From Macrostomum lignano (Eukaryota), in NCBI GenBank assembly GCA_002269645.1, contig NIVC01001346.1:244940-308939 (forward strand): a DNA stretch of 64,000 nucleotides, given 5' to 3'. The position numbers and the translations under genes were made by a program. Under the pieces are notes generated by a model. It had not been told where the DNA came from, ran no database searches, and saw only the letters and a list, made by a program, of their open reading frames with translations. Every line of letters begins with the position of its first letter. Position 1 is the first letter of the stretch. Shown here one piece after another: positions 277 through 31,396 of this stretch.

Positions 277-3200
277 TTACCGCCCAGCATGCGAGCCCCT
301 GTGGAACCCGCTGCTCGAGTCGAATCCGTTAAAAGCTCCGGCCGCCTCGGCTCTGTCCGGCCAGTCGGAGCTGCTCCAGACTTCAGGCATCTCGGCCACT
401 CTGGCCGAGCCGGAGTCCAGCTGGTACGGCACTAGCCTGGCCAGCTGGTGGTGCTGCAGTTTGCCGCGCCAAACTCGCGGCCGCTGCTCCTCCTCGGTCG
501 AGTCCTCGCTGCCCAGATGGACGCTCAAGTCGTCGTCCACCGCGACCGGCTGCGATGTGGTCCGGCGATCGCTGCGAGAGCCTCCGGACAGCGTCATGGC
601 CTGGCGACGGGTGCGCTCCTCGGACTGCTCGTACTGGTGCTGGATGATGGTCACCATCTGGGGGGGGAGGGATCAGAATCCGATCGTGAGCATGCATTTG
701 CGAAGGCTGAGTTTGTAACCAACTGAATAATGCAAGCAGCTATTCAATAGCATTTTGATTCTTCACAGCAACAGAAAGTCTAGAAATTAGACAAAAAATA
801 TACTGAAATAGACCCAACAGTCACAAGAACAGACACAACAGACACTAGAACAGACACACCAGAGAGACACTAGAACAGACACAACAGACACTAGATCAGA
901 CACAACAGACACTAGATCAGACACAACAGTCACTAGAACAGACACAACAGAGAGACACTAGAACAGACACAACAGAGAGACACTAGAACAGACACAACAG
1001 TCACTAGAACAGACACAACAGAGAGACACTAGAACAGACACACCAGAGAGACACTAGAACAGACACAACAGTCACTAGAACAGACACAACAGTCACTAGA
1101 ACAGACACAACAGTCACTAGAACAGACACAACAGTCACTAGAACAGACACAACAGACACTAGAACAGACACAACAGTCACTAGAACAGACACAACAGACA
1201 CTAGAACAGACACAGCAGACACTAGAACAGACACAACTGTCACTAGAAGAGACACAATAGTCACTAGAACAGACACAACAGTCACTAGAACAGACACAAC
1301 AGTCACTAGAACAGACACAACAGAGAGACACTAGAACAGACACAACAGTCACTAGAACAGACACAACAGTCACTAGAACAGACACAACAGTCACTAGAAC
1401 AGACACAACAGTCACTAGAACAGACACAACAGAGAGACACTAGAACAGACACAACAGTCACTAGAACAGACACAACAGAGAGACACTAAAACAGACACAA
1501 CAGACACTAGAACAGACACAACAGTCACTAGAACAGACACAACAGTCACTAGAACAGACACAACAGTCACTAGATCAGACACAACAGTCACTAGAACAGA
1601 CACAACAGAGAGACACTAAAACAGACACAACAGTCACTAGAACAGACACAACAGTCACTAGAACAGACACAACAGTCACTAGAACAGACACAACAGTCAC
1701 TAGAACAGACACAACAGAGAGACACTAGAACAGACACAACAGTCACTAGAACAGACACAACAGAGAGACACTAAAACAGACACAACAGTCACTAGAACAG
1801 ACACAACAGTCACTAGAACAGACACAACAGTCACTAGAACAGACACAACAGTCACTAGATCAGACACAACAGTCACTAGAACAGACACAACAGAGAGACA
1901 CTAGAACAGACACAACAGTCACTAGAACAGACACAACAGTCACTAGAACAGACACAACAGACACTAGAACAGACACAACAGTCACTAGAACAGACACAAC
2001 AGAGAGACACTAGAACAGACACAACAGTCACTAGAACAGACACAACAGAGAGACACTAAAACAGACACAACAGTCACTAGAACAGACACAACAGTCACTA
2101 GAACAGACACAACAGTCACTAGAACAGACACAACAGTCACTAGAACAGACACAACAGTCACTAGAACAGACACAACAGACACTAGAACAGACACAACAGA
2201 CACTAGAACAGACACAGCAGACACTAGAACAGACACAACTGTCACTAGAAGAGACACAACAGACACTAGAACAGACACAACAGACACTAGAACAGACACA
2301 ACAGAGAGACACTAGAACAGACACAACAGACACTAGAACAGACACAACAGAGAGACACTAGAACAGACACAACAGTCACTAGAACAGACACAACAGAGAG
2401 ACACTAGAACAGACACAACAGACACTAAAACAGACACAACAGACACTAGAACAGACACAACAGAGAGACACTAGAACAGACACAACAGTCACTAGAACAG
2501 ACACACCAGAGAGACACTAGAACAGACACAACAGACACTAGATCAGACACAACAGACACTAGATCAGACACAACAGTCACTAGAACAGACACAACAGAGA
2601 GACACTAGAACAGACACAACAGAGAGACACTAGAACAGACACAACAGTCACTAGAACAGACACAACAGTCACTAGAACAGACACACCAGAGAGACACTAG
2701 AACAGACACAACAGTCACTAGAACAGACACAACAGTCACTAGAACAGACACAACAGTCACTAGAACAGACACAACAGAGAGACACTAGAACAGACACACC
2801 AGTCACTAGATCAGACACAACAGTCACTAGAACAGACACAACAGAGAGACACTAGAACAGACACAACAGTCACTAGAACAGACACAACAGACTAGATCAG
2901 ACACAACAGTCACTAGAACAGACACAACAGACTAGATCAGACACAACAGTCACTAGAACAGACACAACAGAGAGACACTAGAACAGACACAACAGACACT
3001 AGATCAGACACAACAGTCACTAGAACAGACACACCAGAGAGACACTAGAACAGACACAACAGTCACTAGAACAGACACACCAGAGAGACACTAGAACAGA
3101 CACAACAGTCACTAGAACAGACACAACAGAGAGACACTAAAACAGACACAACAGTCACTAGAACAGACACAACAGAGAGACACTAGAACAGACACAACAG

Positions 3201-31396: not shown

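Follow-up and report, generated by a model that had tools for sequence, protein, structure and literature searches.

Can a TRPM channel carry ankyrin repeats at its N-terminus? The question is raised by a locus of the flatworm Macrostomum lignano, which lies in a stretch of 64,000 nucleotides of contig NIVC01001346.1 (assembly GCA_002269645.1, positions 244,940 to 308,939; hereafter the window, whose own numbering we use). To our knowledge, TRPM is usually described as the sole TRP family without ankyrin repeats. We put a probability of roughly 85% on the reading that the region represents the 5' and central portions of a single M. lignano gene (Mlig025325g1), which encodes a TRPM2-like, Nudix-linked cation channel with about four added N-terminal ankyrin repeats. 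The layout is a low-complexity N-terminus, three to four ankyrin repeats, a Cys/His motif, SLOG/MHR1-2, MHR3-4, S1-S6 with the pore, the TRP helix and a helical region, followed by a NUDT9H domain outside the window. So read, the gene is a clean and conserved exception, with ankyrin repeats ahead of an otherwise complete TRPM2-type channel.

The gene lies on the minus strand of the window, where 22 exons running from 31396 to 281 join into a stop-free frame of 1662 codons. We built the exon model on the letters of the window and then corrected it against the GenBank proteins PAA69120.1 and PAA68780.1. An earlier model restricted to GT-AG introns (20 exons, 1625 amino acids) was dropped: it had missed a 54-nucleotide exon and a 12-nucleotide microexon and had used a wrong donor for exon 14. 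The start ATG at 31396-31394 is the first in-frame methionine after a stop. Exons 1, 2 and 3 end in phases 0, 0 and 2, and exon 3 joins exon 4 at 28435. Their donors are CAG|GTAAGG, TCG|GTGCGT and TGA|GTGAGT, and the acceptors are of the AG type (...ccag|, ...gcag|). The joined peptide reads NQVDQ|AGQLPLH, DLPDS|EGKTIL and EAGL-D-NGSTSPVCPCG across exons 1-4. The initial annotation of this DNA had proposed that the ankyrin exons splice in frame, in these phases, into TRPM exon 4. The AG/GT sites and the stop-free frame bear this out, and the junction peptides that it predicted are found exactly as claimed, all three of them also in PAA68780.1, which opens with the same MNSSQTRL... A 33-nucleotide "mini-intron" within exon 3, taken from an old frameshifted WormBase model (A0A1I8..., P0001), was rejected; it is unused in the transcript-based models.

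The ankyrin module is spread over the first three exons. Exon 1 (30983-31396) holds the start ATG, the low-complexity N-terminus and ankyrin repeat 1 (amino acids ~105-138; DCPLMHAAVVTRNYHVIRRLIERN...NQVDQ). Exon 2 (30317-30574), in phase 0 at both ends and matching the database protein P0156 at 100% in tblastn, encodes repeats 2 and 3 (AGQLPLHVACRTGD..., HGRTPLHWALAAES...). A degenerate fourth repeat, the capping one, follows in exon 3 (29117-29319; EGKTILNYLEDE...INPAVQLLGQL) together with a linker and the opening part of the TRPM N-terminal motif (LTRLVCTYRMPP). This fourth repeat is complete in the M. lignano paralogue Mlig003066, where SSGRSALDCAREAGPKARACLRLLESA aligns with the exon 3 segment. 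Exon 4 (28264-28435) continues with the TRPM N-terminal Cys/His motif CPCGQPADTHE and the beginning of SLOG (NNCFGEMEFSGLGNTAQ). Since exon 3 encodes the last ankyrin repeat as well as the first part of the TRPM N-terminal motif, ankyrin module and TRPM body are tied together by a single exon. Introns 1 and 2 lie at boundaries between ankyrin repeats and are both in phase 0.

At profile level, Pfam detects tandem ankyrin repeats in the spliced product: Ank_2 covers residues 109-196 (E 9e-10, 38-39 bits against a cut-off of 27.3), Ank_4 residues 110-158 and Ank residues 175-196 (E 2e-7). A designed-consensus ankyrin probe gave E 1e-5 on P0156 and E 1e-10 on the Opisthorchis protein. None of the solved TRPM structures aligns upstream of about residue 292 of the window protein. 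The absence of N-terminal ankyrin repeats, a descriptive rather than a defining rule for TRPMs (Himmel 2020), thus does not hold for this gene.

Everything that follows the module is TRPM. The spliced protein contains SLOG/MHR1-2, MHR3/4 and six transmembrane helices with pore loop and TRP helix. In the scan that the initial annotation had proposed, Pfam finds Ank, SLOG (LSDAT_euk) and Ion_trans together in it. LSDAT_euk, the SLOG domain in TRPM, spans residues 348-589 (E 6e-35 on the shorter and 2.2e-34 on the longer model), the TRPM2-like MHR domain PF25508 reaches E 5.5e-48 on the window model and 1.5e-51 on P0156, and Ion_trans gives E 4e-12 on the longer window model. The transmembrane/TRP region is collinear with the solved structures of TRPM2, TRPM4, TRPM3, TRPM5 and TRPM8, the best solved relative being Nematostella TRPM2 (6co7, E 2.7e-150). 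The alignment to Nematostella TRPM2 (nvTRPM2) and human TRPM2 (hsTRPM2) holds from exon 4 onward, and every one of the best relatives with a name or a solved structure is a TRPM2.

Within this body, SLOG extends through exon 5 (27138-27309; SLOG/MHR1, YFRVSQ...LVISVYG...WKAAGGSG), exon 6 (26890-27053; AWVVTDGYGG...AIGISPWG) and exon 7 (26135-26351; LDHNHSHFLLPDSGRYGD...FRSRFE), the last of which includes the equivalent of hsTRPM2 R302. Behind an intron 7 of 11.1 kb, exon 8 (14343-15013) contributes the end of SLOG and MHR1/2 in 223 amino acids. The 54-nucleotide mini-exon 9 (14082-14135; 18 amino acids, SQTIGILRNGLQVAVGKT) has AG/GT flanks. Exon 10 (13042-13156), where the Pfam TRPM2-like domain PF25508 matches, encodes MHR3. 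An MHR3 loop lies in exon 11 (12862-12948), and exons 12 (11746-11953; RPALDLFTWSLLTQR...) and 13 (11404-11632; FEARAEGVLEECY...FISHRCCQEMLDIIWKG) encode MHR3/4 and MHR4. Exon 14 (10884-11122), whose 3' boundary was set from the GenBank protein, forms the pre-S1 linker, and exon 15 (8947-9043) the pre-S1 helix (RILDFYFAPVVRFIYST). The S1-S4 voltage-sensor-like domain with the motifs LEEIRQ and WNIMD lies in exon 16 (7859-8302), S5 and the pore helix/filter region (YFQVFGELKVD) in exon 17 (6447-6642). Exon 18 (6343-6354) is the 12-nucleotide microexon, which reads cag|TGACTACTTTAA|gtaagt and adds V-T-T-L; exon 19 (5155-5284) closes the pore loop and encodes S6 (LAPILLGVHIVLTNVLLLNLLIATF). The TRP helix (HWTLQRYMIMREYTERSP) with the TRP box HWTLQRYMIMREY is found in exon 20 (4196-4386) and the rib/pole helix region in exon 21 (3302-3636), whose product, judged from its sequence pattern, is likely a coiled coil. 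Exon 22 (281-657), a linker ahead of NUDT9H, has a GT donor at 280-279.

Two sets of residues were compared with TRPM2. The equivalents of hsTRPM2 E843, Q846, N869 and D872, which we take to form the TRPM2 Ca2+ site in S2-S3, are identical in exon 16 of the window protein (HMMER alignment to 6mix). In alignment A3 (columns 1215-1250) both M. lignano proteins keep EExRQ and WNxxD in S2-S3, and the trematode members of the ankyrin-bearing clade described below show ENVRQ/EHIFQ and WKSLE/WKCLE at the same columns; judged by these letters, the Ca2+ site of the parasite orthologues may no longer have its Asn/Asp pair. As for Y295, R302 and R358, presumably the N-terminal ADP-ribose pocket of hsTRPM2 in MHR1/2, the equivalent of R302 is kept as R507 and is invariant in alignments A1 and A3. 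Near Y295 the alignment is ambiguous, with a GRYG three residues upstream.

The gene had initially been taken to end at 277, but the TAA at 279-277 sits within the donor G|GTAAGA. We therefore rejected it as a stop codon; the exon ends at 281 and the gene runs on into NUDT9H. PAA69120.1 and PAA68780.1 both continue past exon 22, with SHAGR|YVTDEAGRPMNPSG..., that is SHAGR|YVTDEAGRPMNPSGKPG...LPLWGPNHC... In P0156 the NUDT9H part can be aligned to that domain of nvTRPM2 with E 3.6e-13, and to that of hsTRPM2 as well. As the GenBank proteins run on into NUDT9H, the window ends before the Nudix-homology exons of the gene; the C-terminal NUDT9H expected of a TRPM2-like channel is seen in the GenBank proteins of the locus and is encoded outside the window.

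Are the ankyrin exons and the channel exons joined in one message? The GenBank annotation of M. lignano was made from RNA-seq transcripts only, with transcriptional units cut at mapped trans-splice and poly(A) sites and reading frames called by TransDecoder (PMC5730564). The best phmmer match of exon 8 is PAA69120.1 (M. lignano BOX15_Mlig025325g1) with 100% identity, and the window model is identical to it over all the residues that this protein covers (1050/1050). The full-length sister copy PAA68780.1 (Mlig025325g2, 1889 amino acids) agrees with the window model at 1655 of 1662 residues, and its gene model spans the exon 1 ATG to NUDT9H in one mRNA. Because a transcript-built annotation keeps g2 whole, at least copy g2 has one mRNA that joins the ankyrin exons to the channel, and this near-identical model supports the earlier proposal that both parts belong to one gene. 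The microexon at 6354-6343 is present in the GenBank proteins, and since a 12-nucleotide exon is unlikely to come from an ab initio predictor, its presence fits transcript evidence.

These data also bear on the idea that we are looking at two genes: a small ankyrin gene (exons 1-2), and a TRPM mRNA that starts at the methionine of exon 3 (MPAQLRL...) or has a spliced leader added at that point, with the in-frame join a coincidence or a prediction artefact. Many mRNAs of M. lignano are indeed trans-spliced, and about 7% of transcripts in the assembly represent polycistronic precursors (PMC5730564). Moreover, exon 3 offers an in-frame ATG just ahead of the TRPM motif, the older WormBase model places an acceptor directly before it, and a retained intron 2 would end the frame of exon 2 after six further codons. 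Nevertheless, the g2 model is uninterrupted from the exon 1 ATG to NUDT9H although the pipeline cuts at trans-splice sites, exon 3 itself encodes a fourth ankyrin repeat whose homologue in the paralogue is complete, and the same fusion exists in the 46%-identical paralogue and in trematode orthologues of 26-30% identity. We consider two separate genes very improbable.

How far the architecture extends was followed with a homologue set of 381 TRPM relatives from an exhaustive phmmer search with exon 8, of which the best 150 representatives were probed for ankyrin repeats. Ankyrin-containing queries in word-indexed searches drew generic ankyrin proteins and missed almost all TRPMs; an ankyrin-free schistosome query was used for homologues as well. 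Among the best 150 of the 381 relatives, the designed-consensus ankyrin probe finds N-terminal repeats in one flatworm clade only. The architecture is therefore unusual for a TRPM, as had been suspected: within these 150 representatives an N-terminal ankyrin module is confined to flatworm proteins. Ank_2 above cut-off together with LSDAT_euk, the TRPM2-like domain and Ion_trans is found in PAA68780.1, PAA85706.1 (Mlig003066), KAG5447154.1 of Clonorchis and KAK4474030.1 of Schistosoma mekongi, and Pfam finds the same architecture in the window protein. Precomputed Pfam matches combine PF12796 and PF18139 in S. turkestanicum, an S. rodhaini cluster, Trichobilharzia and an old S. mansoni model; the S. 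rodhaini cluster counts 26 members, drawn from eight species of Schistosoma (rodhaini, haematobium, bovis, intercalatum, guineensis, curassoni, spindale and others). From Echinostoma, Mesocestoides, Anoplocephala and the monogenean Cichlidogyrus come members or fragments whose best scores are against the ankyrin-bearing clade, and the member from the cestode Anoplocephala keeps the N-terminal extension and a conserved xPxH motif.

A neighbour-joining tree of 50 near-full-length sequences (1050 columns with <20% gaps, 100 bootstraps) contains a flatworm-only clade with a bootstrap of 100. This clade splits in two. The ankyrin-bearing half (99) unites the window gene, Mlig003066, Schistosoma, Clonorchis, Opisthorchis and Anoplocephala, and its near-complete models from Macrostomum, Schistosoma, Clonorchis and Opisthorchis all carry N-terminal ankyrin repeats. 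The other half is the TRPM_PZQ clade (100), which consists of four trematode proteins of 1760-2242 amino acids together with Mlig001812 and A0A1I8HSQ2 of M. lignano, all of them free of ankyrin repeats. The window gene stands outside it, in its sister clade, and thus belongs to a family of paralogues found across flatworms, the sister group of the praziquantel target TRPM_PZQ. The outgroups, annotated as TRPM2-like (molluscs, a hemichordate, a nemertean and a salamander), are without the module. Since both they and the TRPM_PZQ clade are without it, parsimony favours a single gain after the duplication that split the two flatworm clades. The residue number E1495 given for Ml.TRPM_PZQ matched in no M. 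lignano model; the tree points to Mlig001812 as the published gene.

Compared with its known relatives, the window protein resembles TRPM_PZQ (e.g. Smp_246790) in being a flatworm-specific TRPM2-like protein with SLOG/MHR, six transmembrane helices, TRP helix and NUDT9H, and both share the flatworm GTGG motif at the position of hsTRPM2 R358. TRPM_PZQ, however, forms the separate sister clade with its own M. lignano genes and without N-terminal ankyrin repeats, and an M. lignano orthologue of it has been functionally tested. The "ankyrin-like repeat domain" of the TRPM_PZQ papers is the internal MHR region. TRPM2 itself (Nematostella 6co7, zebrafish 6drj, human 6mix; E 2.7e-150 to 1e-123) is collinear with the window protein from the Cys/His motif through SLOG, MHR, the transmembrane region and TRP to NUDT9H. 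Against it, the N-terminus of the window protein is longer by about 290 residues, among them the ankyrin repeats; the R358 equivalent is a Gly and the pre-S1 linker is longer. TRPA, TRPC, TRPN and TRPV also put N-terminal ankyrin repeats on a six-helix TRP channel, but there the repeats lead straight into the pre-S1/transmembrane part without SLOG/MHR, whereas the core of the window protein is unambiguously TRPM. The full set of ankyrin repeats, SLOG, MHR, transmembrane region and NUDT9H is shared with its clade mates KAG5447154.1 (Clonorchis), XP_035590190.1 (S. haematobium), KAK4474030.1 (S. mekongi), A0AA85JXM1 (Trichobilharzia) and PAA85706.1, which are 26-46% identical to it and auto-annotated as 'TRPM2' or 'ANK_REP_REGION domain-containing protein'.

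One further flatworm channel has to be weighed here, because the architecture would already be known if our gene were the Macrostomum orthologue of TRPM_MCLZ (Smp_333650), the meclonazepam-activated channel of schistosomes. TRPM_MCLZ is reported as TRPM-like with N-terminal ankyrin-like repeats (PMC10788528, PMC12861061), and this likeness speaks for the idea. It is, however, described as lacking MHR1/2/SLOG and a C-terminal enzyme domain, with 3 exons and 1380 amino acids (PMC11731825), while the window gene has a SLOG with E 2e-34, NUDT9H and at least 22 exons. By the published description the repeats of TRPM_MCLZ replace SLOG/MHR1/2 and no Nudix part follows; in the window gene they precede a complete TRPM2-type body. 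In addition, the window gene groups with Nudix-bearing, auto-annotated TRPM2 proteins and is sister to TRPM_PZQ, in a tree that holds no TRPM_MCLZ sequence. On the published definition we reject orthology to TRPM_MCLZ, for which we see next to no probability. Identity with an ankyrin-bearing TRPS was likewise rejected. The suggestion in the initial annotation that TRPS proteins carry ankyrin repeats turned out to be mistaken: Himmel et al. 2020 sought such repeats in TRPS, found none and inferred a loss before the TRPM-TRPS split (PMC7306681).

The accompanying suspicion that this may be a known but rare flatworm architecture stands in part. The architecture is conserved in flatworms and already visible in databases, but the described TRPM_MCLZ layout differs from it, and our full-text literature search returned no paper that describes ankyrin repeats and SLOG in one TRPM, so that in the literature searched it is undescribed. 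To judge from a figure legend in PMC11731825, the domain cartoons of other schistosome paralogues there may show an ankyrin plus SLOG layout. Of the phylogeny that had been envisaged for the transmembrane region, the placement beside TRPM_PZQ was obtained (in its sister clade, which itself has a bootstrap of 99), while TRPM_MCLZ and TRPS lie outside the sequence set of the tree.

Several points weigh against the reading of the region as one gene for an ankyrin-bearing, TRPM2-like channel. The tree is distance-based and contains neither TRPM_MCLZ nor a verified TRPS sequence. The Anoplocephala member gave no Pfam Ank match at E<0.01. The equivalent of hsTRPM2 R358 is a Gly in both flatworm clades, which makes gating by ADP-ribose doubtful. 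At the junction 10884|9043 no GT-AG sites in the window can make the join, and the intron ends in GG..CG. The GenBank proteins imply this junction (VDPETGD|RSRRC), copy g2 with four extra residues (DRLP), and it could be a case of non-canonical splicing, a hidden microexon or an artefact of assembly or annotation. The intron is filled with an 18-nucleotide-type tandem repeat (10115-9153). Finally, the GenBank protein of the window's own copy, g1, begins only within exon 8, at Met613. Transcripts hence support the ankyrin-TRPM join directly in the 99.6%-identical g2, not at this locus.

The late start of PAA69120.1 could mean that copy g1 yields mainly an N-terminally truncated channel without ankyrin repeats and SLOG, or that its transcript is broken in the 11-kb intron 7 by a nested gene. 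This intron does hold a same-strand open reading frame of 324 codons, whose processing signals could have led the pipeline to cut the transcriptional unit. On the other hand, exons 1-7 are intact with canonical splice sites and differ from g2 by only 5 substitutions (in exon 1, window against PAA68780.1: K34T, R35T, R38T and P133S; S237 is a further copy-specific residue). A channel that starts at Met613 would be missing the greater part of SLOG and would probably fail to adopt a TRPM fold, and multi-mapping reads among three near-identical copies, to go by the annotation methods, can fragment the model of one copy. We regard a truncated or broken g1 as unlikely and, exons 1-7 being intact, view the GenBank g1 protein as a fragmented transcript model of the full-length gene. 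M. lignano has three near-identical copies of the gene (g1-g3) and three of the paralogue Mlig003066, numbers in keeping with the duplicated state of the DV1 genome that Wudarski et al. describe. The nested frame itself (21300-20326, minus strand, within 20326-21503) has a weak match to FkbM-type methyltransferases (Methyltransf_21, E 6.5e-4), and the frame upstream of it, from about 21503, is signal-anchor-like (MHRQCQKVKLLLLLLGCTAAGLLF). Possibly the nested frame is a gene of its own, with processing signals that might account for the g1 start at exon 8.

How would such a full-length ankyrin-bearing channel work? The module probably arose in a single gain that followed the split of the two flatworm clades by duplication; with introns 1 and 2 in phase 0 at repeat boundaries, exon acquisition is the probable route. 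To go by its sequence, the protein would most likely be a tetrameric, Ca2+-dependent, non-selective cation channel that is gated via its cytosolic MHR/NUDT9H layer, Ca2+ dependence being suggested by the four conserved Ca2+-site residues. The distal ankyrin stack would probably sit outside the MHR1/2 ring as a docking or regulatory arm, with a protein, the cytoskeleton or cross-talk with NUDT9H as predicted partner, and is unlikely to be the primary gate. A ligand, scaffold or mechanical input through the module, as the initial annotation proposed, would be conjecture. A wider scenario, which we hold to be rather doubtful, is that, at the base of Rhabditophora, a TRPM2-type channel regained the ankyrin arm, that the family is a third pan-flatworm druggable TRPM lineage beside TRPM_PZQ, that the arm is a gating or tethering input unique among TRPMs and that TRPM_MCLZ is a possible derivative minus SLOG and NUDT9H.

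Both free-living and parasitic flatworms possess the family. Of the paralogues of the praziquantel target it is the closest, and it is uncharacterised in the literature searched. Given that M. lignano can be made transgenic and is amenable to RNA interference, the role of the ankyrin arm and the natural ligand can be approached there and in heterologous cells, ahead of drug-target work in the parasites.

The surroundings of the gene are those of a eukaryotic, intron-rich genome with many tandem repeats. A gene resembling those of terminal uridylyl/poly(A) polymerases is found at 41133-46102, upstream of the channel gene and in the opposite orientation (plus strand; MTPAP-like central domain with E 1e-25, TUTase, PAP_assoc). 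Very long tandem-repeat arrays occupy introns and intergenic DNA at 30300-29400, 25460-23470, 10115-9150, 5100-4500, 3270-790 and 48680-51570. Between exons 2 and 3 the repeat is (TTAG)n, and some arrays are open in all three frames, which results in long spurious reading frames. At about 33680-34100 (plus strand) we recognised by eye the C-terminal fragment of a reverse transcriptase of the long interspersed nuclear element (LINE) type. The old UniProt model A0A1I8... (P0001) reads this LINE region antisense as its N-terminus and is frameshifted in exon 2, and is thus a poor gene model.

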